Shown here: positions 1-57,074 of the stretch, one piece after another
How the letters are laid out: the number at the start of each line of letters is the position of its first letter
How positions within the stretch are numbered: position 1 is the stretch's first letter
Origin: Mytilus edulis
Lineage: Eukaryota
Length of the DNA stretch: 64,000 bases
Assembly (NCBI RefSeq): GCF_963676685.1
Contig: NC_092355.1
Location: forward strand, 36,518,001 to 36,582,000
Direction of reading: 5' to 3'
Notes under the pieces: model-generated
Databases searched by the model: none
The model's input: the letters and a program-made list of their open reading frames with translations, nothing else
Told to the model about the DNA's origin: nothing
Translations under genes and position numbers: made by a program

Positions 1-1437
1 ATAGACATACAATTTAAACATATTAAACAAACAACAGTTATAAAGAAACGCAATTTTCAAAATAGCTATCATAATCAATGTACAATTAAAAGTTACATAC
101 ACTAAAATGTATTATGTTAGTCATTGAAATTTAATACCAATGCCTTCAGTACATTTAGATCAACACAGCATTGTAAAATGTGATTATATTTCGGATAAAT
201 ATCGTACTGTTGCCCTTACTGCTTCACACGTTTTTGACATAGTCCATCATTCTGAAATGTATAATTATCCCCGTTTTATAAAATGAAATTATGTTGGAAA
301 TATTTCAGTATTACATTTTTTAATCTTAATTCATACTACAAAAATGTATACTATTCGCTTTTTGTTTGATTACGCATGTTAATTACAGCACATACTGTTT
401 ACAAACTTTCAGCAAATACAAAAAATCGTGTGACACGGTTATCAGTATTCGGAGCAAATATTTTCCAGACGATAAATATAACACGTAAAACATTAAAATG
501 CAAATGAACGAAAAAGAAAATGTTTTGTTTTAATTGATATTGTTATTGATAATTCCATGAACCTTGTTAATAATTTTTTTTAAAACATTGTTTACTTTGT
601 ATGTAAAAGCGTTTCACAACGAACGATTACATCTTAGTAATATGATCATAATAAAATTTGTTTGTATTTGAAACAAAACATTTTCGTTGCATATTTAAGG
701 CACTTACCCCATGCAGTTGCCGCACGTTAATCCGCTAAAAAATAATAGAAATCAAAATCAAAATCTAGTGTTATCACGAACTTTAGAATCGATGTTACCT
801 TATTTGTCCAATACGTGTAGACCGTTTTCTAAATTCTTGACAGAAAAAAAATTAATAATAATCAGTTCGGTAAGGGCCATATTTCGCTCCGATTATAAAA
901 TGTAATGTTACAAGATACAACAGGTTTTAAGTTGACTTGAATACACGTGGAAAAGTTAAATAGAAAAGGGGACCATTTTAGGCCCTTATCAAAACTACTC
1001 CTTTGTATTTCCAATTAAGTCACATTGAATCTCACTGACCTTTTATCAAACCGCATATTGGTCCAAATGATCTCAAATATGTTTAGTTTTGCTTTGTGCA
1101 CAATTAGTGATATTTGTGGGAGAAATACATGATTAATCCTATTATATCAGTGATGACCTTTAAAACATTACATTGTATGAAAATTTGTGCACCATATATT
1201 ATCCTTCCTTTCACATTATAATACTCTTTTGTACTTTTAAAATATACTTTTGAATCATAATATGTATCTTACTCTGCAGAAAACACGAATTGACTTGTTG
1301 ATAGCTACCCTGTGTAATTTTTGCTTTTAATTTTCAAATGATTGATCGTATTCACCAAAAGGGCATAACGATAGTATGCAGTAAACATGCAAATGAGAAA
1401 GAAATAAGCTTCCATTGCTATGCGCTCTTAATCTACC
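1..1437 (+). mobile_element. 3' end of a second copy of the Kolobok-like element (truncated by the window edge)
   Basis: Near-identical to 44169-45633 and ends ATCTACC|TTGA. Confidence 0.7.
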
Positions 1438-3219
1438 TTGAGAAATAAGTTAAAATAAGTTAATATGATTTAATGATTAATTTAGACGAATCAATCAATT
1501 GTGTTGCCTCGAGTGCTGGAAAAGGAAAATGAATGCATGTGTAATGTAGAGAAAAACAATATCGAGTCCTATATTGTAGACAATATAGTGATTGATCTTG
1601 TGTATGCATGTCAAGACTAGTTTTAAACTTCAAATATGGTGTCAACTTTATGGTTGTTATGCTAGTGGTCAACATCCAATGAGTAAATAATAATGATTGA
1701 AATACTTAAAAGGGAAAGCAATTTCTTTATTTAACAGTTTTTTCCGTGTATTGCATTGCAGTTAGAATTATAAATATTCCTCTTATTCAAACATGAACTT
1801 GATACTTACTAACTGATAAAAAAAAAGAATTGTTATTTTAGTGTGTTTACCATCACTGGTGAATTTTAAATATTTGTGTATTGCCTTGTCATGAATTGCA
1901 AAAAGGTATTTCACTTTTGATATTAAGGCTATATATAACAGATTATGCTACTTCATGTATTTTCATCTCCTAATTAATAAACTATGCTTGTTAGTTATAA
2001 AGATTCCGAAATATCTTTAATGAAATTCCACCAAAGTTTATATGCAATGCAAATAAATATGAAGTTTTAAAACAATCATTTGTATTGATTTAAATTGACG
2101 ACTGAAATAGCAACATATGTGTCGTTTAAAGAAACACTATTATCAACCAATGACGATAACAATAACGATATTTGTTCTTACAATGCATGTATGCTCGACA
2201 AACACATGTGTTATGCTTCAAATATGGTGTCAATTTTCAGTTGTTTCGTTTATGGTAAACGCCCGATGAGTTAATAAGTTGGCTTGTGGGCTTCATCGGA
2301 ACATTTCTTTCTGTGTGTAACCGTATACACTGTTATAGATAGTGCCTCACAGTTTAAGTAATACCATTATGGCCATATTATACAGTTTATCGGGGATACA
2401 TTGTCTCTTGAAATAGTAATGTTGATGTGTGATAATGATTACGAAATGTCTTAAATACATGTTAAGTTATCTATAATTTAATTTACAAATACTCCTATGC
2501 ATCAAACATCAACTTGCTACTTACAGACTGAAAACAAAGAATTTAAAAGTTGCATTATTCTTTTCACCATCGTTGAATCTTTTTTTATTAAGTTGTGTAT
2601 AGCTATGTCATGAATCGCAAAATAAGTATTGTTTTTTACTTTGCAGCTTTATAGAACAGTTGATGCTTGATTTTTATATTATAATTTTTGATCTTATGTG
2701 TGTTTGACAAAGATATTTGTGATGCTGCCAATAAGTTTTAAATTTTCTGTTCGTTTTGCTCGTGATCAACAGCCGATTAGTCAATAAGAAATCTTTATAT
2801 CTTATAAATTTATTTCTGTATGTAACCGTATTCCATTTTATAAATATTGGTAAAGTAATAACTGAATTGCCATATTATACAGTTTATCGGAAATACATTT
2901 TCTTTTTAAATAGCAATGTTGATGTGTGATAATGAAAACGAAATGTCTTTAATATATACATGTCCAACTATTGATATTTGCATCAAACATATAGAGTTTC
3001 CATGAAGCAGTCGTTGGTGATGTTTGAACTGCAAATTACATGTCTATCAAGTACAACAACACCATATAGAGCCATTTACTCAAAACATCATAAATGTTGC
3101 TCGTAGGTATATTTGACTAAACTGGTTTCAAGCTTCTAGTGTCAATTTGCAGTTCATTTTCCTCGTGGTCAACGGCCAAAAAGAAATGAATAATAATTGC
3201 AATATTAAGAGGGGAAATA

Positions 3220-3460
3220 GTTTTCAAAGGTACCAGGATTATAATTAAGAACACCAGACGCCCATTTCGTCTACATAAGACTTACCAGTGACGCTCATGT
3301 CTAAATATTTATAAAGGTATATAAAAATAGCATTGAGGAACTAACATTCAAAAAAGTTGTGCCAAATACGGCTTAGGTAATCTATTCCTGGGACAAGAAA
3401 ATCTTTAGTTTCACGAAAAAATCTAAGTTTTTTAAACTGGAAATGTATATAAATGACCAA
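3220..3460 (+). mobile_element. Interspersed repeat (CCAGACGC..TTTCGTCTACA..CAGTGACG family); also ~47415-47655, ~36800-36910 (reverse) and ~58545-58690
   Basis: Shared core motif in dispersed copies; it interrupts the tandem-unit consensus here. Confidence 0.65.
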
Positions 3461-6400
3461 ATAGTTATTATGTGTATTGCATTGCAATTCAAATTACAAA
3501 CACTTCTCTACATCAAACATCAACTTGCTACTTACAGACTGAAAAAAAAAATGTTACATTATTCTTTTCACTATCATTGATGATTTTTATAATGTTGTGT
3601 ATAGCAATGTCATGAATCGCTAAATGAGTATTTTTTTTTTACTTTTCAGCTTTATAGAACAGTTGATGCTTGTTTGTTTTAAAGATTCAAAAATGTTGTT
3701 ACTAAACTTCCAACAATTTATACATGCATTTAAATGACTATGATGTGTTGATGTAGCAAATATTTGTGTTGACTTGAATTGACAGCTGGAACATGTGGAA
3801 TAGCAACATATGTGTTGTGTTATGAAAACCCGTAATTAAGCAATGACGTAACACATCCTGATTTTTGATCTGATGTATGCTGGTAAAAGACATTTAAGAT
3901 GCTTCAAATACGTTGTCAATTTTCAGTTCGTTTCGCTAGTGATCAACAGCCGAACAGTACAAAAAAAAGGATTGAGCTCGTTATCAGGGAAATTATTTTC
4001 AGAATTAAACCAATACAATGTTACAGGTATTGCCTAGCATATTACCTAATATTCTTATGATCATATTATACAGTTCATCTTTTTTCTGTTGAACAGTAAT
4101 GTTGATGTGTAATAAGGATTTCGAAAATGTTTGTTATAATTGTCAAACTATTTCTATTGGCATTCAAATAATATGGTGTTTCGATGAATCAGAAATTTGG
4201 GTTGTCTTGACGACTTGAGCAACAACATAAATACATGTGTCATGAGGAGAAAAACAATATTCTATCAATGTATAACATTAGTTTTTTTCCATCATTGATA
4301 TATTTTTTTCATTTTGTGTATTGTAATGTTTTGCATTGCAAATTGAGTCTTTATTTATTTTTCCTTTAAAGCTATATAGAATAATTGATCAGAATTGAAT
4401 CTTCAATTGAATAAGTTACGTTTGTTTGCAATAAAGATTCCGATGTGTTTCTAATGAACTTCAAATAATTTATATATTATGCAATTATCGGAATTAAGTT
4501 TTCTTTTGAAATAGTAATGTTGATGTGTGATCAGGATCAATAAATGTCTGTAAATGTCTATAAGCTATTTCTATGAGCTTTACAAAATGTGGTGTTTTGA
4601 TGAAGCAGTCATTGATGTTACTTTGAAGACTTAAACAGCAACATACATGTGTGTGTAAAGTAGAGAAAATCTATATTAAGATATATACTGCAGACATCAA
4701 GTTTGTGAACTTATGTAAGCTTGACAAGACTGGTGTTATGCTTCAAATATGGTGTCAGTTATTTGTTCATTGTCCTCGCGGTCATCGGCCAATCAGTAAA
4801 TACTAGTTATTGTAATATTTGAAAGGGAAAACAATTTATTGTTCTAACAGCTATTACGTGTATTGCATTGCAGTTTGAATTATAAATACTTCTCTAATCA
4901 AACTTGAACTTGCTACTTACTGACTGAAAAAAAAGAATGTTACATTAGTCTGTTTTCAGCATCATTGATAATTTATAATGTTTATGTATTGCCATGTTAT
5001 GAATTTCAAAATGGATATTAATTTATTTTTCCATCAAAGTTACATGTATATAAAATTATTGATCAGAATTGAATCGTCCATTGAATGAGTTACGCTTGTT
5101 TGCATCAAAGATTTAGATGTGTTTCTAATGAACTTCAAACAATTTATATATTATGCAATTATCGGAATTAAGTTTTCTTCTGAAATAGTAGTTTTGATGT
5201 GTGATCAGGATTAAGAAATGTCTTTAAATGTCTTTAAGCTATTTCTATGAGCTTTACCAAATGTGGTGTTTTGATGAAGCAGTCATTGATGTTGCTTTGA
5301 AGACTTAAACAGCAACATACATGTATGTGTAAAGTAGAGAAATATATATTGAGCTATATACTACAGACATCAAGTTGGTGTTCTTATGTAAGCTTGACAA
5401 TAGTTATTGTTATATTTGAAAGGGAACACAATTTAACAGCTATTATGTGTATTGCATTGCAGTTTGAATTATAAATACTTCTCTAACCAAACTTGGACTT
5501 GCTACTTACGTACTGAAAAACAAACGAATGTTACATTAGTCTTTTTCAGCATCATTGATTTTTTTTATAATTGTTATGTGTTGTAGTGTAATGAATTTCA
5601 AAATGGGTATTAATTTATTTTACCATTGAAGTTATATAGAATAATTGATCAGAATTGAATCGTCCTTTGAATAAGTTACGCTTGTTTGTAGTAAAGAGTC
5701 CGATATGTCTCTAATGAACTTCAAACAATTTATATATTATGCAATTATCGGAATTAAGTTTTCTTTTGAAATAGTAATGTTGATGTGTGATCAGGATTAA
5801 GAAATGTCTGTAAATGTCTACAAGCTATTTCTATGAGCTTTACAAAATGTGGTGTTTTGATGAAGCAGTCATTGATGTTGCTTTGAAGACTTAAACAGCA
5901 ACATACATGTACGTGTAAAGTAGATAAAATCTATATTGAGAAATATACTGCAGACAATAAGTTGGTGTTCTTATGTAAGCTTGACAAGACTGGTTTTATG
6001 CTTCAAATATGGTGTCAGTTATGTGTTTATTGTCCTCGTGGTCATCGGCCAATGATGAAATAATAGTTATTAGAATATTTGAAAGGGAAGACAAGTTCTT
6101 GTTCTAACAGCTATTACGTGTATTGCATTGCAGTTTGAATTATAAATACTTCTCTAATCAAACTTGAACTTGCTACTTACAGACTGAAAAAAAGGAATGT
6201 TCCATTATTCTTTTTTAGCATCATTGATTATTTTATAATTCATATGTAATGCCATGCATGTAATGAATTTCAAAATGGGTCTTAATTTATTTTTCCATTC
6301 AAGCGATATAGAATACTTGATCAGAATTGAATCGTCCATTGAATAAGTTACACTTCTTTGCAGTTAAGATTCCGATATGTCTCTAATGAACTTCAAATAA

Positions 6401-6767
6401 TTTATATATTATGCAATTATCAGATTTAAGTTTTCTTTTGAAATAGTATTGTTGATGTGTGATCAATATTTAGAAATGTCTTTAAATGTCTTTAAGCTAT
6501 TTCTATGAGTTTTACAAAATGTGGTGTTTTGATGAAGCAGTCATTGGTTTTACTTTGAAGACTTAAACAGCAACATACATGTATGTGTAAGGTAGAGAAA
6601 ATATATATTAAGCTATTTACTGCAGACATCAAGTTGTTGTTCTTATGTAAGCTTGACAAGATTGATTTTACGCTTCAAATATGGTGTCAGTTATTTCTTC
6701 ATTTTGCTCATGGTCAACGGCCAATGAGTATATACTAGTTATTGTAATATTTAAAAAGGAAAACAAT

Positions 6768-7318
6768 AATATTTTCTCGCGGTTCGAAGTAAAGCGGGAA
6801 AATATTGTATTGACGTTATGGGTAATATGCGTATGATCCAATCAGAGGGGGGATTTAAATCCGGGTATTATGTATGTTTGATTTGTTTGTCACTTTCTAG
6901 CCGCCGTTCGTATGTGCATGACTTAAACTTAAGTCATAATGTATATATAGTTATATATTTTTGAAGTATTTTATTTTTGTTCAAAATTGTGTGTTCGTCA
7001 TCTCTCTCGTTATATAAGGTAAGGTCTGGCTACCTTTTTCCTGAGATAGGCTTGGCATTGTTGTCGGATACAGGTTTCCATTTTAAAAAAAATGGTTTTT
7101 CCTGGACGGCCTCTAATATCTGTGAGGGAAATGTTTTAGAAAATTTAAGAGAGAGTGTATAGAAGCATTGAGTTGCGACATGTTTATTATTTGTTGTTTG
7201 AAACAATATTGTATGTGTTATAATAAAATTACATCCGGCGTCCATCAAATACGGCGAGCGAGCGGCAAATTGATATTTGCGTTTGTGTTGTTTTATGTAT
7301 AGGCATATATAGTATAGA
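6768..7318 (-). mobile_element. ~550-bp insertion in the tandem array, Helitron-like
   Basis: Interrupts the unit consensus. The minus strand starts a|TCTATACT and has a terminal hairpin AATATTTTCTCGC..GCGGGAAAATATT at 6768-6806; no clean CTRR end. Confidence 0.45.
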
Positions 7319-9053
7319 TAATACTTTGTTATTCTAACAGCTATTACGTGTATTGCATTGCAGTTGAATTACAAATACTTCTCTAATCAAACTTGAACTT
7401 GCTACTTACATACTGAAAAGAAAAAACTAATGTTACATTAGTCTTTTTCAGCATCATTGATTATTTTATAATTTTTATGTATTGCCATGTAATGAATTTA
7501 AAAATGAATATTAATTTATTTTTCCATTCAAGCTATATAGAATATTTGATCAGAATTGAATCTTCCATTGAATAAGTTACGCTTGTTTGTAGTAAAGATT
7601 CCGATGTGTCTCTAATGAACTTCAAACAATTTATATATCGGAATTAAATTTTCTTTTGAAATAGTGATGTTGATGTGTGATCAGGATTATGAAATGTCTT
7701 TGAATGTCTATAAGCTATTTCTATGAGCTTTACAAAATGTGGTGTTTTGATAAAGCAGTCATTGATGTTGCGTTGAAGACTTAAACAGCAGCATACATGT
7801 ATGAGTAAAGTAGAGAAAATCTATATTCAGCTATATACTGCAGAAGTTGGTGTTCTTATGTAAGCTTGACAAGACTGGTTTTATGCTTCAAATATGGTGT
7901 CTGTTATTTGTTCATTGTCCTCGTGGTCATCGGCCAATGAGTAAATAATAGTTATTGTAATATTTAAAAGGGAAAACAATTTCTTGTTCTAACAGCTATT
8001 ACGTGTATTGCATTGCAGTTTGAATTATAAATACTTCTCTTATCAAACTTGAACTTGCTACTTACTTACTGAAAAAAAGGAATGTTACATTAGTCTGTTT
8101 CAGTATCATTTATTATTTTATATTTTTTATGTATTGCTATGTAATGAATTTCAAAATGGGTATTTAATTTTTGACATTGAGCTATATAGCACAGTTTATC
8201 AGAATGGTATATTATATTAAATACGTTATTCATGTTTTTTCGAAAGATTTCGATATGTCTTAAATGAACTTCAAACATATCAGATATGCATCAAAAGAAA
8301 TTTGATGTTCTGATGAAGCAATCATTTGTGTTGGCTTGGATTTCCGGCTGGAAAAACAACATATATTTCGTGTTTAGACGAATGATAATCAACCAATAAC
8401 GATAAACATAATAATTTCTGCTGTTATGTCTCTTTGACAAAGACATAAGTTGCGATTGTTTACATATGGCGTCAATTCTGAGTTCGTTATGCTCGTGGTC
8501 AATGGCTGATTGGTCAATAAGAAGGCTTGAGATCTTTATAGGATAATTTATATCTGTATTTAAATGTATGCAGTGTTAAAGGTATTTTCATTGATAACAT
8601 TATAGCCATATTATACAGTTTGTAAGAATGAAATTTACTTTTGAAATGTTGATGTTATATAAGGATTTCGATATGTTTTTAATAAAAGTCAAGCTTTTTT
8701 CATTTTATTGAAACAATATGATTTCTTGAAGAAGCAGTCATTTGTGTTGCCTTGAAGACTTGAACAGTATCATACATGTATATGTCAATTGGGGAAAAAC
8801 ATATTGAGCCATATACTATTATCATCATAGTTGTTGCTCTTATGTAGGCTTGACAAGACTGTTTTTATGCTTCAAATATGGTGTACATTCTTTGTTTATT
8901 TTCCTTGTGTGCAACGGCTATGGAGTTAATAAGTAGAATTGTAATCCTTCATTTTTAAAAAAGTTCATTTTTTAACCGAACATATAATTTCAGGTATTGC
9001 ATTGCAGTTTAAGTAAGAAATAATTCAACCTTGAACTTGCTACTTACAATCTG

Positions 9054-12000
9054 GCCCCGGCGCCATAAAACTTTTTTTTGCTGCGTAAAAAAATATTCTC
9101 AGAATGAATTATTTTACTCAGCTAAGAATGAGAAATTTTTTATCCGCCATAAAAAAATATTCTCAACGTTGAGAATATTCTCAGCTGAGATTTTTTTTTT
9201 CTCAGCTGAGTATTTTTTTCTCAGTGACGTAAGTGGTAAAATAGTTGTTTGAAAACTAAAACGTATACCAAACTTCTCTAAAACGCAGTTTTATCTCTTA
9301 AGAAATAATGTAAAACATTAAAAGAATCTATGATAGATAAGATGACAAGTAGCATTTAGTAGGCATCTGTAACCACAGTCTTGACAAAAAGTCACAGAAT
9401 ATAAAGTCGGCAAATAATTTGTGTTATTATAAAAAATATAGAACCTAATAGATATTATAAGAGAAAGATCTTGAAATACTTGAGTTATTTACCCGTATCT
9501 TCTTATAAATATGTATATATGTATATATATTTTTTTATATTTCTTTATTTAGATCTATATTTTGTATTTTTTTAAAAGATAAAATGCAATCTTCGTTGAC
9601 GTTTACGTGAAGAGTGCTTTCTTTCACGTCCGCACTTCTATCGAGTATGGCGTGCCAAATAAACATTTTGAAAAGATAATTATTACGGATCAATAACATA
9701 CATTATGTATTCAGACGACATAAGACAACATGTGACAATTTTAAGAGAAACAGAGCTGCTTTTTTCTCACATCTACAATGGAAAAAAAACAACCCAAAAA
9801 AACGACAAACCAAATATGTTTAAATCAATATGAAAGCCAGTAAATAATTTGAATCCGTTTTCAAGATATATGTAACTTTAATAATAATATAAATCTGATA
9901 CAGAATTTAACATGTTTAATACGATTTAACAATTATGCAAGTAGTCATAAAAATTGCTCTGCATAATGAGTTTAATATTATATTGCACAGGAAGAGAAAA
10001 TAAAAAGTACGACGTCGTGTGAGAAGGCATGGCATATATATTTAATGTCCATTACAGTTATTAACAACACCTTGTACAAATATTATTTTCGAAAATAAAA
10101 ACAGTTAAATAAAACAAACAAAACTATCCGATTTACGAGGGTCATGAAAAGGGGAGTAGGGGAAGATGTTCTATTTTTCTCTATTCGGTAAGAAATATTT
10201 TCTGTAAAATTCTGATCGTGCATATGGAAATTTCCTTCTGTATCATGATTTTGACATGATAAATGATTTGTCTGGATCAACGACATATGTATGACAACAA
10301 TACCCCCCCCCCCCGAATCTGTCACCTTACTACTGTACTGCACAAATGATACATTCCTGCATATCAATATTTTAACTAATATCTGTTTAAAACCAAACAA
10401 GGGGGGGGGGGAGGATTTTTTTTACTTTCTTTGTAAAACTTTTGATATCTAAGATAATAAATAGAAGATAGGATGACATAACATGTGGGTATATTTGATT
10501 TATACATGTATTTGGTTTAGTAGATATGAGGTACCGGTACTGCAATCTAATTGATGTACCAGTAGTAAATTGTAAAAATAAATTTAAGAGAGAAAAGACA
10601 TTGATAAGTCCAACTGTCCAAAAATATATAAAAAAATTGCATATCTATCATCTATGTTGGAGCATATATTTGAAATTTATTGGAAGTGAACAAAACACAA
10701 AAAAAAAAAAAAATCGAAAACAATGTAATTATCCGTCCTCGAGTATCAGTCAAACAGCCCTTACCAAAAAATGTTGTATTAAATTGCAATGAATTATGGA
10801 TCTTACAAAACTGGAACATAAGACGTAGTACTGTAAGCATGCTGGCGAACGTGAGCTCAGACTTTTTGACTCTGTATTTCTATTTAAAGTCATAATAAAC
10901 AAGTGACCGGTGAAAAATAATGTTATTCCAATTATTGAACAAATGCATACAAACATCATAAACTAAGTCTTCTGTGCACATTTTATATTTTTTTTCGCAT
11001 AAATTTCGTATAATCGTCAATTTGTTTTTCAATCGGTCAGTGTTGTAAAAATATAGCAGGTAATTAAAGTTCGTGTTTTGAAGCCGAAGTTTAACGATTG
11101 TCACCTGTTTGTCAACAATCCACCAAAAAGCATGGATATTGAGCACGTGTTTAACATGTACAATCAGATAATAGTTTATTTTAAGGACATTCATGCGTAT
11201 TGCGATCACCGGATTTTTACGAGATGGGTCACACGGAGGTCACTTTGCATACGGAAAATATGTCGGGGAATTGCTTCCTGGAAGGAAACAATTAGAATAA
11301 TGTAAACTTCTTCTTAATATGAACAAATTAAAGAATTTTCTTCAGAAAAAAGTATATGTACATAAGTTTTATAACGAAAACTATCCATTGAGTTATAAAA
11401 AACATATGCATTATTTTTTTTTAATTTGAGGTTTCTTATGACTTTAATTACCGTTAGTTGTTCATTTATAAATTTTGAAAAATCTAAAGAAACTGAGATT
11501 TCAACTCGGACAAAGTTGACCTTCGTCTCTTTGCCATATTTCTGATTTGTTGTTTTCAATTTGTTTTCCACTATTGCAGCGATTTTGTCAATGATCATAT
11601 TGGTCTGATCTCTGACACGAACTGTTTTATTATGGGGTAATGTTTGTGTAATTTCTGACACAATGCAGGAGAAGGATGTTATGTTGACTTTGTCTGTAAT
11701 AGTGGACGAAATGATACGTCAAGATTTGTTAACTCCTGATGCAAGATCGTGATTTTTTAGCAAAATACTGATGGTTATGGATGTACAGAAATTGCACTGC
11801 TTACGTACATCAATTGACCAATTCCGATTACGACCAGTTCAATATTTCACTCGTTTTACCTTATTCTTAATTTTTATATAAGAAAATTGTACATTTTAGC
11901 ACCCCATTTTTCAGTCTTTTTTCTCTTTCTTTTTTTTTTTGGCACATTTTTTCTTCGCCTCGTTTATGTGGGTAATTTCTAAGAAAGATCAGATATTCAA

Positions 12001-12629
12001 GCGTCAAGCGTTAAAAGTGAAGAATTATTTACAATGAGAAGCTGTTTAATTGGTCGCTTTTTTTGTAGTATCTTTTAAAATTTGGTAAGATTAATATGGT
12101 ACAACCAACTAACAAAGATGGGGTTATCAACTTACATTCTTAATTTTCATATGCTTTTACAGAATTATGAGACATATTTCAGTCGTTTTACCTTACTCTT
12201 ATTTTTTATGTAAAAAATGCACATTTAAGCACCCCATTAATCAGCTCTTTTAGACAACATTGATTTTGAGTATTCATCCTAAAAAATGTATGAAAAAAAT
12301 ATGTTAAGGAATAAAGATGTATATGTTCCTTTGGATAGAATTTGATTTAAGGTGATAAGTGAAGTTCTTCATTGCAAATTTTAACAAAAACACTATCAAC
12401 ATTTGTAATTTTATATCAAATTTCCTTAAAAAAAAACATTTAAGATTTTTTTTATATACTTAAGTATGGTTTTGGCTATACTTAAATATTTAAGAATATT
12501 CTTAACTTTGAGTAAGAAAATATCTGAGAATTTTTTTATGGCGGTGCATTTTGCTGAGAATAAAAAAATTGAGAAAATTCTCAGGCTGAGTAAAAAAAGT
12601 TTACTCAAATAGTTTTATGGCGCCGGGGC
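9054..12629. mobile_element. Non-autonomous PIF/Harbinger element (3.58 kb)
   Basis: 19-bp TIR GCCCCGGCGCCATAAAACT; 3-bp CTG (CWG) TSD at 9051-9053 and 12630-12632; subterminal CCGCCATAAAAAAAT/TTCTCAG repeats; the empty site caatCTGaaac is visible in the paralog at 51646-51656. Confidence 0.88.
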
Positions 12630-13266
12630 CTGAAACATTAGAATTTTATCATTGTTGATTTAATGATTTATTTTGGTATGCTCGAGGTCAACGGCCGACG
12701 GATAAATTTCAAAACCTGTCAGCTATTCTGTGTACATAGTTATCTATTCTGTGTAAACTAATCATTCAATCTTTCCTAATTCTTTTTAGAAATAAACAGG
12801 TTGATAGGTACTAATGCAGACAAGTAAATGATGATGTCTTTGGGTATGATGCTAAAACTATGCAAAAATTGACAGGTTTGCTATTAGAATATAAATGTAA
12901 AGCAGCATTTGTTTAATATTGTATCTTTCTTTAAAATTATCATCTAAACATTTATTTGCTTTCTTTTTGTTTTAGATGTGAACATCCTTAGTGTATGTAG
13001 GAATTACATACACCGGTAAAAAGCAGGTGTCTGTATATATATAAGAAGTGAAGACATACTACATGTTATTTGACTGTCCTTCACTACTGGTCTAGAGCAG
13101 ATAACAAATGCATAATATTATAACGAAATATGACAATATGACAACTTGCAGCGACAATGATCTATTTAACTATTAAGATGCACATGTATAAGTGAGGTTC
13201 ATATAAAATAGAAACATGGAGTTTACCTGGATGTTCTAATATTCAAGTTGAAATATAAGTACTTAC

Positions 13267-13296
13267 ATGGCGCTGAATGGTTGAATTTCTTCACGC
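13267..13296 (-). CDS. 30-nt phase-2/phase-2 exon (G-REEIQPFSA-I) of B-box gene 1
   Basis: Minus strand catttaag|GCGTGAAGAAATTCAACCATTCAGCGCCAT|gtaagt. Same length, splice sites and open frame in paralog 2 (52320-52349). Confidence 0.65.
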
Positions 13297-14737: not shown

Positions 14738-15757
14738 CTGTCACAAATAAGATTGTTATGCTGAATGTTCTAAACGTTTTGTTTTGACACATCTTTATTC
14801 TATGAAAACTTCAGGATGTTATAGTCTAACTGCTTTATGTTGTGTTTATACATATGTATCTCCAGTCAAAATCATGGTACTTCATGGTATAGTTCATATG
14901 CGTGTCGCCGATCAATTAATACTCTCTTTAAGCATTCATTACGTCTCGTGCAAATGCCTTTAACTGTATGTTCATACACTTAATACATTATGTGCACACA
15001 ATTATTACGTTATGTGCAAACAACTTAAAGGTATTGTGCCAACATCGTTTACGTTATGTGCAAACACCTATTTCGTTATGTGTCAGTTTTCTCGTTTGAA
15101 TTGTTTTACATTGTCTTATCGGGGCCTTTTATATGCGGTATGGGCTTTGCTCATTGTTGAAGGCCGTACGGTGACCTATAGTTGTTAATTTCTGTGTCAT
15201 TTTGGTCTTTTGTGGATAGTTGTCTCATTGGCAATCATACCACATCTTCTTTTGTATACTATTTCATTATGTGCAAACACCTATTACGTTATGTGCCAAT
15301 GACGATTTCATTATGTGCTAACACCTATAACGTTATGTGCAAACACCTATTACGTTATGTATCACACCTATTTCATTATGTGCAAACACCTATTACGTTA
15401 TCTGCAAATACTTATTACATTATGTACAAACACCTATTACGTTATTTGCAAATTCCTATTAAATTATGTCCAAACAGATATTACGTTATATGCAAACACC
15501 AATTACGTTCTGGTAAACGCTGTTTGACACAGATTAGAATAAAAACGCATCAATGATATACGCTTTGAAAATTAAGAAAACTACAAGTTGGAGCTTTCTA
15601 AAAAGTTGTGGCTGCTTCGCTCCATCCTTATTTAAGGTAGTATGTGTGCATCGTTTTTTTGTTGATTTACTATTGGAAATGTGGTATTTTTAGATATTGA
15701 TTGATATAAAAATGTTTAGTTTTAAGGGGAAATTATGTTGTTTACTCTAAGAGTGTG
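14738..15757 (+). repeat. ~1-kb repeat with internal 22-bp minisatellite (ACACCTATTACGTTATGTGCAA)n; inverted partner at 27032-27839
   Basis: CTGTCACAAATAAGATTGTTATGC start; 22-mer array at ~14990-15510, interrupted by another repeat at ~15085-15255. Confidence 0.8.
15085..15255 (+). mobile_element. Interspersed repeat (CTCATTGTTGAAGGCCGTACGGTGACCTATAG family); also ~26810-26940, ~33160-33305, ~55560-55700, and reverse at ~22560-22665 and ~53770-54060
   Basis: Multiple diverged dispersed copies in the window. Confidence 0.65.
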
Positions 15758-29602: not shown

Positions 29603-29617
29603 CCACAACCAGAACAT
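29603..29617 (-). CDS. 15-nt phase-2/phase-2 microexon (R-C-S-G-C-G) of B-box gene 1
   Basis: Minus strand ttatacag|ATGTTCTGGTTGTGG|gtaagt. Conserved with the same splice sites in paralog 2 (54409-54423) and in frame with exon 1. Confidence 0.72.
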
Positions 29618-30446
29618 CTGTATAAGTATCCATGGCGTTGCTCCTTTTTTTCAAGGACTGGTGCACAATTGCTATCAAAAAGATTTGATTTCTTTATGGT
29701 TTTTTTTAAATGTTTAAATAAATAATTCATTTTGAAATTATTTAATTCTATTTAAAAGTACTATGTAAAATCTGGGATTTTTTTTTATATAAAGGATAAA
29801 AGTACAGGTAAACACACTAATGTACAAAACTGTTGTTGTCATTTTTCAATAAAGTATAATGAAATACGAAACTATTATAGTTTCATAATATGTCTTATCA
29901 TTTAACAGTATGCTCACATTATATAAAATGTACATTTGGATATTTGAAATTTCTTCAATATTTGATAATGATGTTAACTTAAAAAAAACCACTCTTTTGT
30001 AGATGATAATTTTTTTCTATTACTCAATGTAAAGTGATAACTTGTATTATCAATGCATATACTGTTATGATTAATTGTGTTATCATTATGATCAATGCAG
30101 TTCTTATCATATGTTTTGTATAACTGCATGAGCTATTTTTTCATTACTTGTGGACGGTGTTATTCCGTTACTTAAAGCGCTTCATTAATTGGAAAACACT
30201 GTCTACGTCAGTAGTTACCGATATAGTTTATGTTACTTATAAAAAAGAACGTGTATTTTGGAGATATATTTAAAAAGAGTAGGTATGTTCCAAGCTTTCA
30301 ATCTTAAGTTGTGGTATGTGTATTTGTCAATCATTTCTTGCTATATATGAACTTTAAAAATAATGTCACTCAAAATTTTAAAGTTTTGCAAGGTTTATGA
30401 TGCAAACTGTATCAATTTAAAAGACATCGCATATTGTTATATTTAC

Positions 30447-31213
30447 CTAATATTATATGTCCCTATCATTTGTCTGATGTCATCTTCAGCTACAGATTTA
30501 CGACTAAATGATATTTTGGGAAACTTTGGAAGAGAATTTATATGTAGTTTGTCAATTTCTTCTTTCAGATTATTGATCTTTTGTACCAAATTTCCATCCT
30601 GTCGGGTCTTAGCTAGTTCTGTTCTCTTTCTGTCTAATGTCTGTACGGCTACAAGCTCGGATTTAGCATCAGCTAACATATTCATCAGCTTGTCTTTCTC
30701 CTTCTTGGATTGTTCTTTCACTAAAGTAATCATCTGAGCTACGGTTTCATCAACCATACGTTTAATCTTACCGCCTTCGTCGTTGATGGCTTTTATAACA
30801 GACTCAACAGAATTATCAAACGATATTAAACTATCCTCAATTTTCTTTATATTTTGATTTGCTTCATTTGTTGTGGCATGAATTTTCGTTTCGTTTTCCC
30901 CTTGTAGTTGAACGATGACATCGAAAATCTGGGAAAACGTATGCCCATTGTGTTTTCCTGTCACACAACGTGTGCATATCTGTGCATTACATGTGTTACA
31001 ATTTAAAGTCAATTCTTCTTTGTGTTCATTACATTTAGATTTACCTTCCGGGATAAGTTCGGAAGCTTTTTGAAACTGGTGGTTTCTCGATAACTTCTGT
31101 CTATTGTGTAGTAACTTACAATTTCCACAATAGTATTCTTCACAGTCAATGCAATAGTGTGATCCCGGGGCACTCACGCAAACCTCACATGTTTTAGACG
31201 CAGCTTGAGCCAT
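30447..31213 (-). CDS. Coding exon 1 of RING-less TRIM-like protein (B-box1, B-box2, coiled coil), paralog 1
   Basis: ATG at 31213 (MAQAASKTC). B-box1 CEVC..YCIDCEEYYCGNC..H..H; B-box2 CNEH..CNTC..ICTRC..H..H; then a long helical/coiled-coil region. The exon is 767 nt (255 codons + 2) and ends ATT AG|GTAAAT, a phase-2 donor, so the ORF-track stop is intronic. Confidence 0.92.
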
Positions 31214-44600: not shown

Positions 44601-46005
44601 ACACGGTTATCAGTATTCGGAGCAAATATTTTCCAGACGATAAATATAACACGTAAAACATTAAAATGCAAATGAACGAAAAAGAAAATGTTTTGTTTTA
44701 ATTGATATTACTCTGCTTAATATTTTTTTGTTATTGATAATTCCATGAACCTTGTTAATAAATTTTTTTAAAACATTGTTTACTTTGTATGTAAAAGCGT
44801 TTCACAACGAACGATTACATCTTAGTAATATGATCATAATAGAATTTGTTTGTATTTGAAACAAAACATTTTCGTTGCATATTTAAGGCACTTACCCCAT
44901 GCAGTTGCCGCACGTTAATCCGCTAAAAAATAATAGAAATCCAAATCAAAATCTAGTGTTATCACGAACTTTAGAATCGATGTTACCTTATTTGTCCAAT
45001 ACGTGTAGACCGTTTTCTAAATTCTTGACAGAAAAAAAAAATAATAATCAGTTCGGTAAGCAATGGTAAGGGCCATGTTTCGCTCCGATTATAAAATGTA
45101 ATGTTACAAGATACAACAGGTTTTAAGTTGACTTGAATACACGTGGAAAAGTTAAATAGAAAAGGGGACCATTTTAGGCCCTTATCAAAACTACTCCTTT
45201 GTATTTCCAATTAAATCACATTGAATCTCACTGACCTTTTATCAAACCGCATATTGGTCCAAATGATCTCAAATATGTTTAGTTTTGCTTTGTGCAAAAT
45301 TAGTGATATTTGTGGGAGAAATACATGATTAATCCTATTATATCAGTGATGACCTTTAAAACATTACATTGTATGAAAATTTGTGCACCATATATTATCC
45401 TTCCTTTCACATTATAATACTCTTTTGTACTTTTAAAATATACTTTTGAATCATATTATGTATCTTATTCTGCAGAAAACACGAATTGACTTTTTGATAG
45501 TTACCCTGTGTAATTTTTGCTTTTAATTTTCAAATGATTGATCGTATTTACCAAAAGGGCATAACGATAGTATGCAGTAAACATGCAAATGAGAAAGAAA
45601 TAAGCTTCCATTGCTATGCGCTCTTAATCTACCTTGAGAAATAAGTTAAAATAAGTTAATATGATTTAATGATTAATTTAGACGAATCAATCAATTGTGT
45701 TGCCTCGAGTGCTGGAAAAGGAAAATGAATGCATGTGTAATGTAGAGAAAAACTATATCGAGTCCTATATTGTAGACAATATAGTGATTGATCTTGTGTA
45801 TGCATGTCAAGACTTGTTTTAAACTTCAAATATGGTGTCAACTTTATGGTTGTTTTGCTAGTGGTCAACATCCAATGAGTAAATAATAATGATTGAAATA
45901 CTTAAAAGGGAAAGCAATTTCTTTATTTAACAGTTTTTTCCGTGTATTGCATTGCAGTTAGAATTATAAATATTCCTCTTATTCAAACTTGAACTTGATA
46001 CTTAC

Positions 46006-49000
46006 TAACTGATAAAAAAAAAGAATTGTTATTTTAGTGTGTTTACCATCACTGGTGAATTTTAAATATTTGTGTATTGCCTTGTCATGAATTGCAAAAA
46101 GGTATTTCACTTTTGATATTAAGGCTATATAGAACAGATTATGCTACTTCATGTATTTTCATCTCCTAATTAATAAACTATGCTTATTAGTTATAAAGAT
46201 TCCGAAATATCTTTAATGAAATTCCACCAAAGTTTATATGCAATGCAAATAAATATAAAGTTTTAAAACAATCATTTGTATTGATTTAAATTGACGACTG
46301 AAATAGCAACATATGTGTCTTTTAAAGAAACACTATTATCAACCAATGACAATAACAATAACGATATTTGTTCTTACAATGCATGTATGCTCGACAAACA
46401 CATGTGTTATGCTTCAAATATGGTGTCAATTTTCAGTTGTTTCGTTTATGGTAAACGCCCGATGAGTTAATAAGTTGGCTTGTGGGCTTCATCGGAACAT
46501 TTCTTTCTGTGTGTAACCGTATACACTGTTATAGATAGTGCTTCACAGTTTAAGTAATACCATTATGGCCATATTATACAGTTTATCGGGGATACATTGT
46601 CTCTTGAAATAGTAATGTTGATGTGTGATAATGATTACGAAATGTCTTAAATACATGTCAAATTATCTATAATTTAATTTACAAATACTCCTATGCATCA
46701 AACATCAACTTGCTACTTACAGACTGAAAACAAAGAATTTAAAAGTTGCATTATTCTTTTCACCATCGTTGAATCTTTTTTATTAAATTGTGTATAGCTA
46801 TGTCATGAATCGCAAAATAAGTATTGTTTTTTACTTTGCAGCTTTATAGAACAGTTGATGCTTGATTTTTATATTATAATTTTTGATCTTATGTGTGTTT
46901 GACGAAGATATTTGTGGTGCTCCCAATAAGTTTTAAATTTTCTGTTCGTTTTGCTCGTGATCAAAAGCCGATTAGTCAATAAGAAATCTTTATATCTTAT
47001 ACATTTATTTCTGTATGTAACCGTATTCCATTTTATAAATATTGGTAAAGTAATAACTGAATTGCCATATTATACAGTTTATCGGATATACATTTTCTAT
47101 TTAAATAGCAATGTTGATGTGTGATAATGATAACGAAATGTCTTTAATATATACATGTCCAACTATTGATATTTGCATCAAACATATAGAGTTTCCATGA
47201 AGCAGTCGTTGGTGATGTTTGAACTGCAAATTACATGTCTATCAAGTACAACAACACCATATAGAGCCATTTACTCAAAACATCATAAATGTTGCTCGTA
47301 GGTATAGTTGACTAAACTGGTTTCAAGCTTCTAGTGTCAATTTGCAGTTCGTTTTCCTCGTGGTCAACGGCCAAAAAGAAATGAATAATAATTGCAATAT
47401 TAAGAGGGGAAATAGTTTTCAAAGGTACCAGGATTATAATTAAGAACACCAGACGCCCATTTCGTCTACATAAGACTTACCAGTGACGCTCATGTCTAAA
47501 TATTTATAAAGGTATATAAAAAGAGCATTGAGGATCAAACATTCCAAAAAGTTGTGCCAAATACGGCTTAGGTAATCTATTCCTGGGACAAGAAAATCTT
47601 TAGTTTCACGAAAAAATCTAGGTTTTTTAAACTGGAAATGTATATAAATGACCAAATAGTTATTATGTGTATTGCATTGCAATTCAAATTACAAACACTT
47701 CTCTACATCAAACATCAACTTGCTACTTACAGACTGAAAAAAAAAATGTTACATTATTCTTTTCACTATCATTGATGATTTTTATAATGTTGTGTATAGC
47801 AATGTCATGAATCGCTAAATGAGTAATTTTTTTTTACTGTTCAGCTTTATAGAACAGTTGATGCTTGTTTGTTTTAAAGATTCAAAAATGTTGTGACTAA
47901 ACTTTCAACAATTTATACATGCATTTAAATGACTATGATGTGTTGATGTAGCAAATATTTGTGTTGACTTGAATTGACAGCTGGAACATGTGGAATAGCA
48001 ACATATGTGTCGTGTTATGAAAACCCGTAATTAAGCAATGACGTAACACATCCTGATTTTTGATCTGATGTATGCTGGTAAAAGACATTTAAGATGCTTC
48101 AAATACGTTGTCAATTTTCAGTTCGTTTCGCTAGTGATCAACAGCCGAACAGTACAAAAAAAAAGGATTGAGCTCGTTATCAGGGAAATTATTTTCAGAA
48201 TTAAACCAATACAATGTTACAGGTATTGCCTAGCATATTACCTAATATTCTTATGATCATATTATACAGTTCATCTTTTTTCTGTTGAACAGTAATGTTG
48301 ATGTGTAATAAGGATTTCGAAAATGTTTGTTATAATTGTCAAACTATTTCTATTGGCATTCAAATAATATGGTGTTTCGATGAATCAGAAATTTGGGTTG
48401 TCTTGACGACTTGAGCAACAACATAAATACATGTGTCATGAGGAGAAAAACAATATTCTATCAATGTATAACATTAGTTTTTTTCCATCATTGATATATT
48501 TTTTTCATTTTGTGTATTGTAATGTTTTGCATTGCAAATTGAGTCTTTATTTATTTTTCCTTTAAAGCTATATAGAATAATTGATCAGAATTGAATCTTC
48601 AATTGAATAAGTTACGTTTGTTTGCAATAAAGATTCCGATGTGTTTCTAATGAACTTCAAATAATTTATATATTATGCAATTATCGGAATTAAGTTTTCT
48701 TTTGAAATAGTAATGTTGATGTGTGATCAGGATCAATAAATGTCTGTAAATGTCTATAAGCTATTTCTATGAGCTTTACAAAATGTGGTGTTTTGATGAA
48801 GCAGTCATTGATGTTACTTTGAAGACTTAAACAGCAACATACATGTGTGTGTAAAGTAGAGAAAATCTATATTAAGATATATACTGCAGACATCAAGTTT
48901 GTGAACTTATGTAAGCTTGACAAGACTGGTGTTATGCTTCAAATATGGTGTCAGTTATTTGTTCATTGTCCTCGCGGTCATCGGCCAATCAGTAAATACT

Positions 49001-51649
49001 AGTTATTGTAATATTTGAAAGGGAAAACAATTTATTGTTCTAACAGCTATTACGTGTATTGCATTGCAGTTTGAATTATAAATACTTCTCTAATCAAACT
49101 TGAACTTGCTACTTACTGACTGAAAAAAAAAGAATGTTACATTAGTCTGTTTTCAGCATCATTGATAATTTATAATGTTTATGTATTGCCATGTTATGAA
49201 TTTCAAAATGGATATTAATTTATTTTTCCATCAAAGTTACATGTATATAAAATAATTGATCAGAATTGAATCGTCCATTGAATGAGTTACGCTTGTTTGC
49301 ATCAAAGATTTAGATGTGTTTCTAATGAACTTCAAACAATTTATATATTATGCAATTATCGGAATTAAGTTTTCTTCTGAAATAGTAGTTTTGATGTGTG
49401 ATCAGGATTAAGAAATGTCTTTAAATGTCTTTAAGCTATTTCTATGAGCTTTACCAAATGTGGTGTTTTGATGAAGCAGTCATTGATGTTGCTTTGAAGA
49501 CTTAAACAGCAACATACATGTATGTGTAAAGTAGAGAAATATATATTGACCTATATACTACAGACATCAAGTTGGTGTTCTTATGTAAGCTTGACAATAG
49601 TTATTGTTATATTTGAAAGGGAACACAATTTAACAGCTATTATGTGTATTGCATTGCAGTTTGAATTTTAAATACTTCTCTAACCAAACTTGGACTTGCT
49701 ACTTACGTACTGAAAAACAAACGAATGTTACATTAGTCTTTTTCAGCATCATTGATTTTTTTTATAATTGTTATGTGTTGTAGTGTAATGAATTTCAAAA
49801 TGGGTATTAATTTATTTTACCATTGAAGTTATATAGAATAATTGATCAGAATTGAATCGTCCTTTGAATAAGTTACGCTTGTTTGTAGTAAAGAGTCCGA
49901 TATTTCTCTCTTGAACTTCAAACAATTTATATATTATGCAATTATCAGAATTGAATTTTCTTTTGAAATAGTAATGTTGATGTGTGATTAAGATTAAGAA
50001 ATGTCTTTGAATGTCTTTAAGCTATTTCGATGAGCTTTACAAAATGTGGTGTTTTGATGAAGCAGTCATTGGTGTTGCTTTGAAGACTTAAACAGCAACA
50101 TACATGTATGTTTAAATTAGAGAAAATCTATATTAAGCTATATACTGCAGACATCAAGTTGGTGTTCTTGCTTAAGCTTGACAAGACAGATTTTATGCTT
50201 CAAATATGGTGTCAGTTATTTGGTAATTTTTCTCCTGGTTAACGGCCAAAGAGTAAACAATAGTTATTGTAATATTTGAAAAGGGAAACCAATTTCTTGT
50301 TCTCCCAGGTATTATGTGTATTGCATTGCAGTTTGAATTATAAATACTTCTCCAATCAAACTTGAACTTGCTACTTACTCACTGAAAAAAAAAATGTTAC
50401 ATTAGCCTTTTTCAGCATCATTGATTATTTTATAATTTTTATGTATTGTCATGTAATCAATTTCAAAATGGGTAATTAATTTTTGACATTGAGCTATATA
50501 ATATTGAGAATGGAAATGGGGAATGTGTCAATGAGACAACAACCCGACCAAATAAAAAACAACAGCAGAGGGTCACCAACAGGTCTTCAATGTAGCGAGA
50601 AATTCCTGCACCCGGAGGCGTCCTTCAGCTGGCCCCTACACAAATATATACTAGTCCAGTGATAATGAACGCCATACTAATTTCCAAATTGTACACAAGA
50701 AACTAAAATTAAAATAATACAAGACTAACAAAGGCCAGAGGCTCCTGACTTGGGACAGGCGCAAAAATGCGGCGGGGTTATATAGCACAGTTTATCAGAA
50801 TGGTATATTCTATTAAATGAGTTATTCATGTTTGTTATAAAGATATCGATACGTCTTTAATGAACTTCAAACACAATATATATGCAACAACAGAAAATTG
50901 ATGTTTTGATGAAGCAATCATTTGTGTTGGCTTGGATTTCCGGCTGGGACAACAACATATCTGTCGTGTTTAGACGAATAATAATCAACCAATAACGATA
51001 AACATAATAATTTCTGCTGTTATGTCTGCTTGACAAAGATATAAGTTGCGATTGTTCACATATGTCTTCCATTTTGAGCTCGTTATGCTCGTGTTCAATG
51101 GCTGATGAGTCAATAAGAAGGCTTGATATCTTTATAGGATAATTTATATCTGTATTTAAATGTATGCAGTGTTAAAGGTGTTTTCATGGATAACATTATA
51201 GCTATATTATACAGTTTGTCAGAATGAAATTTTCTTTTCAAATGTTGATGTGATATAAGGATTTCGATATGTCTTTACTTAAAGTCAAGCTTTTTTATTA
51301 TATTGAAACAATACGGTGTCTTGATAAAGCAGTCATTTGTGTTGCCTTGAAGACTTGAACAGCATCATACATGTATATGTCAATTGGAGAAAAACCATAT
51401 TGAGCCATATACTATTATCATCATAGTTGTTACTCTTATGTAGGCTTGACAAAACTGTTTTTATGCTTCAAATATGGTGTAAATTCTTTGTTTATTTTCG
51501 TTGTGTGAAGCGGCTATTGAGTAAATAAGTAGGATTGTAATTCTTCATTTGTAAATAGTTCATTTTTTAATCGAACATATAATTTTAGGTATTGCATTGC
51601 AGTTTAAGTAACAAATACGTCTCTTAATCAACCTTGAACAACTTACAAT
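46006..51649 (-). other. Array of seven putative 3-nt microexons of B-box gene 2
   Basis: ATT 51647-51649, TGA 50379-50381, TAC 49707-49709, TCA 49117-49119, TCT 47731-47733, TCT 46721-46723, TTA 46006-46008; all flanked by (T)nCAG-like acceptors and GTAAGT. Confidence 0.6.
50502..50778 (+). mobile_element. High-copy interspersed repeat (ATTGAGAATGGAAATGGGGAATGTGTC family); other pieces at ~13738-13810, ~38806-38885 and ~60480-61065 (reverse)
   Basis: Four dispersed copies in the window; this one is absent from the paralogous site at ~8185 and is flanked by TATATA. Confidence 0.75.
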
Positions 51650-52319: not shown

Positions 52320-52349
52320 ATTTTTCCGAATGGTTGAATTTTCTCACGC
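52320..52349 (-). CDS. 30-nt exon (G-REKIQPFGK-I) of B-box gene 2
   Basis: Minus strand cttttaag|GCGTGAGAAAATTCAACCATTCGGAAAAAT|gtaagt; counterpart of 13267-13296. Confidence 0.62.
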
Positions 52350-54408: not shown

Positions 54409-54423
54409 CCACAAGTAGAACAT
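54409..54423 (-). CDS. 15-nt microexon (R-C-S-T-C-G) of B-box gene 2
   Basis: Minus strand ttatacag|ATGTTCTACTTGTGG|gtaagt; counterpart of 29603-29617 with both Cys codons kept. Confidence 0.68.
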
Positions 54424-54797
54424 CTGTATAAGTATCCATGGCTTTGCATCTTTTTTTTCAAGGACTGGTGCACACTTGCTATCAAAAAGATTTGAGTTCT
54501 TAATGACTTTTTTTTATAAATGTTTAAATAAATAATTCATTTTGAAATTATTTAATTCTATGTAAAAGTTCTTTGTACAGGTAAACACACTAATGTACAA
54601 AGCTGTTGTTGTCATTTTTCAATAAAGTATAATGAAATACAAAACTGTTATAGTTTCATAATATGTCTTATCATTTAACAGTATGCTAACAGTATATTAA
54701 ATGTACATTTGGATATTAAAAATATTCTTCAATATTTGATAATGATGTTAACTTAAAAAAAAAAACTCTTTTGTAGATAATATTTTTTTCATATTAA

Positions 54798-56307: not shown

Positions 56308-57074
56308 CTAATGGTAAATGTCCCTATCAGTTGTCTGATGTCATCTTCAGCTACAGCTTTACGACTAAAGGATATATTGGGAAACTCTGGGAAGAGAATT
56401 TATAGTGAGTTTGTCAATTTCTTCTTTCAGATTATTGATCTTTTGTACCAAACTTTCATCTTGTCGGGTTTTATCTAGTTCATTTCTCTTTATGTCTAAG
56501 GCCTGTCCGGCAACAAGGACGGATTTAGCATCAGACAACATTTTTATCAGCTTGTCTTTCTCCTTCTTGGATTGTTCTTTCACTAAGGTAATCATCTGTG
56601 CTACGGCTTTATCAACCATACGTTTAATCATAATGCCTTCGTCAGTTATGGTTTTAATAACGGATTCAACAGAATTATCAAACGACTTCAAGCTTTCTTC
56701 AATCTTCTTTATATTTTGATTTGCCTCGTTTGTTTTGGCATGAATTTTTGTTTCATTTTCCACTTGTAATTTTGCGACTTCATCGACAAATTTGGAAAAT
56801 GTATGCCCTTTGTGTTTCCTGTCACACAATTGGTACATGCCGGTACATTGCATGTATTACAAAATAACGTAAATTCTTCTTTGTGTTCACTACATTTGGA
56901 TTTTCCTTCCGGGATTAGGTCAGACGCTTTTTGAAACTGGTGGTTTCTCGATAACTTCTGCCTATTATGTAGCAACTTGCAATTTTCACAATAATATTCC
57001 TCACAGTCTATGCAATATTGTGATCCAGGGGCACTCACGCAAACCTCGCATGTTTTAGACGCAGCTTGAGCCAT
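56308..57074 (-). pseudogene. Coding exon 1 of B-box/coiled-coil paralog 2, with two 1-nt indels (pseudogene or assembly error)
   Basis: Colinear with 30447-31213 and the same 767-nt net length. There is a -1 indel in a T run near 56815 and a +1 indel in a G run near 56390, splitting it into ORFs 56709-57095 and 56365-56853. It ends ATT AG|GTAAAT. Confidence 0.85.

Follow-up and report, generated by a model that had tools for sequence, protein, structure and literature searches.

Introduction

The micro-exon genes (MEGs) of schistosomes, for which exon sizes of 3-81 bp are quoted (PMC10526429), display protein variation and accelerated evolution (PMC4350168). Single exons of 3 nt that are recognised, spliced and change one residue have been described as micro-Ex8 of Drosophila homothorax and in cytohesin-1 and MAP4K5 (PMC7392893, PMC6314551, PMC8632122). 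At the ratchet points of Drosophila, a pyrimidine tract and an AG stand beside GTAAGT, so that the upstream splice restores a donor (bioRxiv 10.1101/006163; PMC8605326). Here, we analyse a stretch of 64,000 nt from Mytilus edulis (contig NC_092355.1, positions 36,518,001 to 36,582,000; hereafter the window), which holds two tandem copies of one B-box gene (gene 1 and gene 2) on the minus strand, both with an array of repeat units in which a T-rich tract with a CAG acceptor and a GTAAGTA donor are only 3 bases apart. To our knowledge, 3-nt exons are known only as isolated, conserved cases.

Read as exons, the mussel units share with Schistosoma MEGs very short symmetric exons, far longer introns and the possibility to skip any exon in frame, without a sequence relationship between the two. 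MEGs, however, encode small secreted proteins and consist of nearly nothing but microexons of mixed size, whereas the mussel arrays are restricted to one loop in the tail of a B-box/coiled-coil protein of intracellular type, and every unit is 3 nt long and part of a tandem of ~650-nt copies. In gene 1, 256 of ~300 codons lie in a single 767-nt exon with microexons confined to the C-terminal tail, and the N-terminus directly enters a B-box (residues 9-46); inspection of the sequence, without a dedicated predictor, showed no hydrophobic leader. A coding region made up mostly of microexons and a secreted product with a signal peptide, the two marks of the MEG class, are not found here. The exons of homothorax, cytohesin-1 and MAP4K5 are single, deeply conserved cassettes of fixed sequence; in the mussel, up to 12 units stand in a row and the coding dinucleotide varies by unit and by paralog. 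With ratchet points, the units have the juxtaposed acceptor and donor in common, and likely also the stepwise logic of the chain. Ratchet points represent a zero-nucleotide exon of which no trace stays in the mRNA, and the introns that they divide are tens of kilobases long. In the mussel, three bases always separate AG and GT and would remain in the transcript, with one site per ~650 nt. Neither the abutting AG/GT nor the very long intron of a recursive splice site is present.

Dscam1 and the clustered protocadherins also diversify their products from tandem exons, using whole-domain exons of which one per cluster is selected via competing RNA pairings or promoter choice; common to them and to the mussel genes is the tandem duplication of an exon together with its splice signals in a gene of a diversified family. 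A full-text literature search on microexons in Mytilus returned nothing relevant. Tandem amplification of a one-codon exon adds a novel form to the known microexons and falls outside of the MEG, single 3-nt exon and ratchet-point classes. We assign a probability of roughly 0.55 to the reading that the units are genuine 3-nt exons, which are spliced stepwise and each add one residue to the loop before a second zinc knuckle.

Repeat units with acceptor and donor three bases apart

On the minus strand, the units have the form polyT-CAG/TNN/GTAAGTAGC (slashes mark the borders of the triplet), with nine of them in gene 1 (9050-1810) and seven in gene 2 (51649-46006). The gene 1 array starts with ATT (9048..9050) and continues within 1810..8068 with TAA (8066), TAT (7410), TCT (6181), TAC (5510), TCA (4921), TCT (3536), TCT (2525) and TTA (1810). 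In gene 2, all seven units lie within 46006..51649 and read ATT (51647), TGA (50379), TAC (49707), TCA (49117), TCT (47731), TCT (46721) and TTA (46006). These are exactly the triplets that the original prediction had listed for the minus strand of both genes. All 16 units carry a functional-looking acceptor and a GTRAGT donor. The repeat unit comprises ~650 nt with a spacing of 590-1385 nt in gene 1; taking the window and the paralog arrays together, units recur every 590-1400 nt over intervals of 5-12 kb. Similarity between units is 75-89% in the self-comparison of the window and spans 75-98% altogether.

A 20-nt motif with the triplet left free (NNN) has 61 exact matches in the genome (1.37 Gb), compared with 0 for the reversed control. 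Sixty of the 61 are located on one strand of contig C12, within the two clusters of the gene family that house its paralogs (35.9-36.7 Mb and 41.2-41.6 Mb). Since the motif is restricted to these gene-family clusters, the units do not qualify as a dispersed repeat, a satellite or a transposon. Every array lies downstream of a family exon 3, and in more than ten paralogs of the 35.9-36.7 Mb cluster arrays occupy the same in-frame position. They reach up to 12 units, with ATT as a first-unit type (7 units across paralogs) and a distinct last-unit type (TGT, TAT or TTA). The 41.2-41.6 Mb cluster contains the motif as single units, and at the one locus read there no counterpart of the second knuckle exon described below (K2) was found.

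A hypervariable dinucleotide next to a conserved splice core

For comparison, the arrays of 14 paralogs were collected. A profile hidden Markov model (HMM) of the whole 240-nt region yielded a homology set of 79 units with ~235 scored columns. The sequence AG+GTAAGT is intact in 70 of these 79 units (a count biased upward, as the HMM was seeded with motif-selected units); other windows of 8 columns reach 60 at most, with a median of 31. The splice core deviates from the consensus at 2.4%, the rest of the unit at 20.9%, which means that the 8 core positions are kept about 9 times better than the remainder of the same units. A few units are decayed, by a 4-nt deletion, by GTTAGT or by AT replacing AG.

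The triplet enclosed by this core behaves differently. Among 68 motif-selected units, triplet positions 1, 2 and 3 have entropies of 0.54, 1.93 and 1.70 bits, and the flanks ~0.4; T comes first in 61 of the 68 units and G at position 3 is rare (2/68). In the homology set, triplet positions 2 and 3 (NN) rank first and second in diversity among all scored columns (0.74 and 0.65; mean 0.22), and they stay on top in every divergence class of unit pairs. NN is unlike in 52% of the unit pairs whose flanks differ by 3.9%, and with flanks 5-8% apart the two positions differ in 79% and 69% of pairs, followed by the next column with 52%. The per-site comparison of triplet positions that had been proposed with the original prediction therefore turned out in its favour, as NN exceeds every other unit column in all divergence classes. 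The near-identical TCC units of array K also agree in NN; this speaks against a mere hot spot of mutation. A conserved hairpin downstream of the donor was not detected by RNAalifold in 33 units (-12 to +75), which gave -0.22 kcal/mol and no compensatory pairs in a search that covers local and not long-range pairings.

Gene structure and reading frame

Gene 1 corresponds to RefSeq XP_071142871.1 (labelled P0096). Its exon 1 (30447..31213, minus strand) runs from the ATG to AG/GTAAAT and has 767 nt, i.e. 255 codons plus 2 nt, so that it ends in phase 2; it encodes two B-boxes and a coiled coil and equals residues 1-256 of P0096. In a Pfam scan, the exon 1 protein matches zf-B_box with 48 bits (cut-off 24.1) and ANCHR-like_BBOX with 33.3 bits (cut-off 27), TRIM_CC scores 22.3 bits and stays under its cut-off of 30, and there is no RING match. 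Judged by these domains, gene 1 has a RING-less TRIM-like layout, with B-box zinc fingers followed by a coiled coil. A protein search returned Mytilus proteins exclusively as relatives.

Exon 2 (29603..29671, minus strand; 69 nt, phase 2 to 2) encodes NCAPVLEKKEQRHGYLYRCSGC(G) with the first CxxC knuckle and is part of P0096. A 15-nt exon postulated earlier is in fact the 3' end of this exon (29671-29603), which leaves the phase unaffected. Exon 3 (13267..13296, minus strand; 30 nt, phase 2 to 2) encodes REEIQPFSA plus AT and ends with GCC AT/GTAAGT. The exon structure of P0096 thus fixes the end of exon 3 as phase 2 and NN as codon positions 1-2, in agreement with the phase that had been assumed for entry into the array. 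The hypervariable pair coincides with codon positions 1-2 of a frame that is fixed independently by a RefSeq protein.

The donors of exons 1, 2 and 3 of gene 1 are all in phase 2 and each contains an in-frame TAA (AGG TAA, GGG TAA, ATG TAA); such phase-2 donors are found, e.g., at window positions 30443-30446, 29599-29602, 13263-13266 and 704-707, where an unspliced intron reads NNG TAA. The RefSeq stop of gene 1 is the in-frame TAA within the exon 3 donor. A stop built into each donor explains why public models end at 256, 279 or 289 residues. In all ten paralogs with a located exon 3, its terminus reads NN/GTAAG(T/C)A, a conservation beyond what a stop codon alone needs.

The isoform X3 of RefSeq (P0102) joins exon 1 of paralog L (C12:36664574-36665344), 117 kb upstream, to exons 2-3 of gene 1, and this joint skips two whole gene copies with their arrays. 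The joint is either a misassignment or the product of long read-through transcription combined with splicing across paralogs. In the paralog proteins P0109 and P0095, a thrombospondin-type-1-like cysteine-rich module (WSxGSQWSGC...) replaces the knuckle tail, which suggests alternative 3' exons in parts of the cluster.

A second knuckle exon downstream of the arrays

About 1.1 kb past the last unit of each array, there is a further short exon with a second CxxC knuckle, termed K2. In gene 1 (708..734, minus strand), it comprises 27 nt from phase 2 to phase 2, encodes (x)GLTCGNCM(G) and is bordered by the acceptor ttttttag and the donor GTAAGTG. Ten gene copies have such a phase-2 CxxC exon, 27 or 33 nt long, downstream of the array; in the counterparts of paralogs N, M, H, F, D, C and B (27 or 33 nt), both cysteines are kept and the other residues vary, a pattern that we read as the mark of a coding exon. 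Moreover, public proteins join exon 3 to a K2-type exon (P0112 and P0119 of M. galloprovincialis, P0011 of M. trossulus). As K2 follows the arrays, the units sit in a coding intron between two zinc knuckles. The tail of the gene is a series of small symmetric exons between phase-2 introns, consisting of the 69-nt first knuckle, the 30-nt linker and the 27-nt second knuckle.

Read in phase 2, none of 11 arrays contains a stop (in six copies read through to K2), whereas 8 of the 11 do in phase 0; this bears out the stop-free reading that had been claimed for this phase. The tyrosine that had been put in brackets at the end of the gene 1 array is correct as well, since TA of the last unit and the C opening K2 form its codon.

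An AlphaFold2 model of P0112 (overall pLDDT 67) shows a long helix over residues 96-202 and a beta-hairpin around the first knuckle, with a pLDDT of ~66-77 in the tail. The insertion point would then fall in the segment ahead of the second knuckle, and the model is compatible with a small zinc-binding module, without being proof of one. For P0011, the best match in the M. edulis assembly has 86% identity, and no close ortholog was found there. A second protein search with the two-knuckle tail returned one candidate, and a metagenome scan gave no match.

With respect to the origin of the unit, its interior (window 50853-50897, and the same position in other units) encodes a degenerate peptide ...CLKFIKD, which matches the end of the second knuckle of P0094 (FCQVCFAGTMKFIKEF); exon 1 of P0094 matches P0033 of M. 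coruscus. The origin of the unit may be a duplication that took in an ancestral last exon. The tail of P0094 (Logan transcript) was considered as a chain of NNT codons and rejected, as the end of this tail shows homology to the unit interior and carries a second CxxC.

Splice-site use in gene models and RNA data

Public gene models provide partial support for the use of the exon 3 donor and of a unit acceptor. In P0037, which is identical (100%) to the M. edulis assembly, the exon 3 donor is used and joined to an ordinary exon ~500 nt downstream; the tail of P0037 (YTCSIDLN), which had been a candidate for a run of NNT codons, is encoded by this ordinary exon and was rejected. Gene K has a unit with a 4-nt donor deletion (TCT GTAGC; L017:8619-8653, corresponding to C12:36594619-36594653), and RefSeq P0093 ('uncharacterized protein', 148 residues) joins exon 3 to the acceptor of exactly this donor-deleted unit and reads on, with the unit in its last coding exon. 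In gene K itself, exon 1 lacks its 5' part and a single base is deleted from exon 2. The genome of gene H reads GDM-stop, yet RefSeq P0004 ends with GDI; this ending requires a splice after AT and fits the unit TTA/GTGAGT (ATT TAG). Likewise, the ending YIE of P0036 fits a splice to a TGA unit.

RNA mapping covered paralog G (L025) in four runs, in which the raw-read runs barely express this paralog and exons of 3 nt are unplaceable. The joint between exons 1 and 2 is found in 4 contigs of run X1, and both exons have an RNA depth of 40-135 (X1 contigs). In the bin containing exon 3 and its downstream flank the depth is zero in all four runs, a gap that by itself proves nothing. With zero depth in this bin, the read-through 3' end implied by RefSeq is unsupported in paralog G. 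The mapping yielded no RNA evidence for inclusion of the units, or for the combinatorial or mutually exclusive splicing suggested by the original prediction. Within the intron of paralog G, L025:1316-1370 and 648-741 reach a word depth of up to ~14,000 (X1), with unlike sequences on their two sides; these stretches are fragments of a dispersed, highly expressed repeat that is foreign to the paralog G gene.

Gene 2 and further features of the window

Exon 1 of gene 2 (56308..57074, minus strand) is out of frame relative to gene 1 from about nt 258 to nt 690, owing to two one-base indels that compensate each other. Exon 2 (54409..54478, minus strand) has 70 instead of 69 nt, as an extra A (A-run of 8 vs 7) causes a frameshift. 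Exon 3 (52320..52349, minus strand; 30 nt, REKIQPFGK plus AT/GTAAGT), the array and K2 (44896..44922, minus strand; same sequence as K2 of gene 1) are all intact. In a self-comparison, window positions 44169-50482 and 1-6288 share 97.5% identity, and gene 2 may be a pseudogene whose 3' half has undergone conversion recently. In the translation that the original prediction had given for the gene 2 array, the triplets are as stated but the reading is purely formal, with exons 1 and 2 out of frame.

Gene 1 contains an insertion of 3.6 kb (9054..12629) whose 18-bp terminal inverted repeats, starting GCCCCGGCGCC, are perfect and which has a CAG on either side. The insertion is located exactly between the pyrimidine tract with its CAG and the ATT triplet, separating the acceptor of unit 1 from the tract, and is not present at the matching site of gene 2. 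It resembles a DNA transposon for which 3 bp of the target were duplicated. A block of ~550 nt at ~6770-7320, probably a further inserted mobile element, interrupts one gene 1 unit and is missing from the others. The plus strand between the gene copies has open frames at 42192-43033, 34873-35370 and 38977-39510, one of them with a DEDD-type exonuclease-like motif (FDLETTGL), and these frames are probably parts of mobile elements. Moreover, a 169-nt tandem repeat with 4 copies (28568-29240) lies just downstream of exon 2 of gene 1, and a 22-nt minisatellite is found twice in opposite orientation (15259-15509, 27287-27639) inside the 16-kb intron of this gene.

Discussion

Given an acceptor and a consensus donor three bases apart, each unit is most likely a genuine 3-nt exon, and we infer that such exons are included in the mature mRNA. 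As exons so short cannot be defined across the exon, splicing would have to proceed stepwise: exon 3 would be joined to a unit acceptor, the unit's own strong donor, three bases past the junction, would then serve the next intron, and this cycle would be repeated along the array until K2 is reached. Each step would add TNN, and in phase 2 the T would complete the preceding codon and NN would start the following one. Units that begin with T could be combined in any way without ever forming a stop, and a donor left unspliced would lead via NNG TAA to a clean stop. Length and residues of the loop would be set by the array, and amplification and divergence of the units would give every paralog a loop of its own length and sequence.

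The same splice-site pairs could also stay outside of the mature mRNA, as decoys or way-stations for the intron between exon 3 and K2 or in competition with the exon 3-K2 splice, and the mature tail would then always consist of exon 3 joined straight to K2. This is what the direct joins in P0112, P0119 and P0011 look like, RNA evidence of inclusion was not found in the mapping of paralog G, and the adjacency of acceptor and donor is reminiscent of ratchet points in recursive splicing (bioRxiv 10.1101/006163; PMC8605326). However, the 3-nt spacer puts the regenerated donor 3 nt downstream, so that any use of a unit leaves 3 nt behind, and a spacing of ~650 nt is far denser than the length of the intron would demand. 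Such a role would also leave the excess variability of NN, the frame register and the absence of stops unexplained, and we consider it unlikely. Another use of the acceptors would be that the units are alternative last exons: exon 3 would be spliced to one unit acceptor, the unit donor would remain unused, NN+T and NN+G would be followed by the TAA stop with polyadenylation within the repeat, and every unit would yield a different last residue. All phase-2 donors of these genes contain the in-frame TAA, the unit consensus has an AATAAA ~100 nt before the next acceptor, and P0093, P0004 (I, then stop) and P0036 (I and E, then stop) all end in this way. Yet, the AATAAA region belongs to the least conserved parts of the unit (deviation 0.27-0.44), and although TAA would suffice for a stop, the donor also maintains G+1, G+5, T+6 and A+7. 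The conserved K2 and the growth of arrays to 12 units would find no explanation. Aligners cannot place 3-nt exons, so that a mis-modelled chain would also end inside a unit. Taken together, we regard alternative last exons as improbable.

It is also conceivable that the array is a functionless tandem duplication of an ancestral microexon or of an exon-end/intron junction, in which the motifs persist through youth or gene conversion. The units are clearly tandem-duplicated with their 75-98% similarity, window positions 1-6288 and 44169-50482 are 97.5% identical, gene 2 maintains a perfect array despite its broken upstream exons, and some units have decayed. But homogenisation cannot spare two adjacent bases, youth cannot turn them into the most diverged ones, the splice core is kept ~9 times better than the rest of the units, and arrays occur at the same in-frame position in more than ten paralogs. 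A functionless array thus seems very improbable to us.

Several observations weigh against genuine 3-nt exons. No inspected read, contig or protein has a 3-nt unit between exon 3 and K2. P0112 and P0011 join exon 3 directly to K2, and skipping of the whole array is possible, provided that those genes have arrays at all. P0093, P0004 and P0036 all terminate inside a unit rather than splicing onward, and their last exons may be ab initio predictions. Downstream of K2, we found no symmetric exon, no homolog of the last exon of P0011 and no conserved acceptor followed by a short open reading frame. Within the window, the ATT unit of gene 1 is damaged and gene 2 is broken upstream of its array. As to the conservation pattern, the count of intact cores has the upward bias mentioned above, the unit pairs compared are non-independent, and other unit columns reach a diversity of 0.58-0.64; NN could be merely unconstrained sites among constrained neighbours. 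Finally, the original prediction had combined variable NN with a fixed first T, and only the hypervariability of NN was confirmed: the first T is T in 66 of 79 units (13 deviate), which is about the flank average and speaks for ordinary conservation rather than special fixation.

Genuine 3-nt exons would also allow a more far-reaching and rather tentative interpretation, namely a germline-encoded diversity device in which tandemly amplified one-codon exons, stop-proof through their frame register, would be used in varying combinations, giving many versions per gene of the loop beside a zinc knuckle and more across the ~25 paralogs. Gene families of this kind are massively expanded in bivalves. 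Should the units not be spliced in, it would still need explaining why two bases are hypervariable within the 20 nt that the repeat conserves best. If they are, exon duplication would allow a protein loop to be adjusted in steps of a single residue, and standard annotation and RNA-seq alignment would be blind to such exons; the RefSeq models at this locus stop at, or just past, the last alignable exon. The arrays offer a compact natural test bed for how the spliceosome deals with exons far under the steric limit, and they may represent a source of recognition diversity in this TRIM-like family expanded in bivalves.

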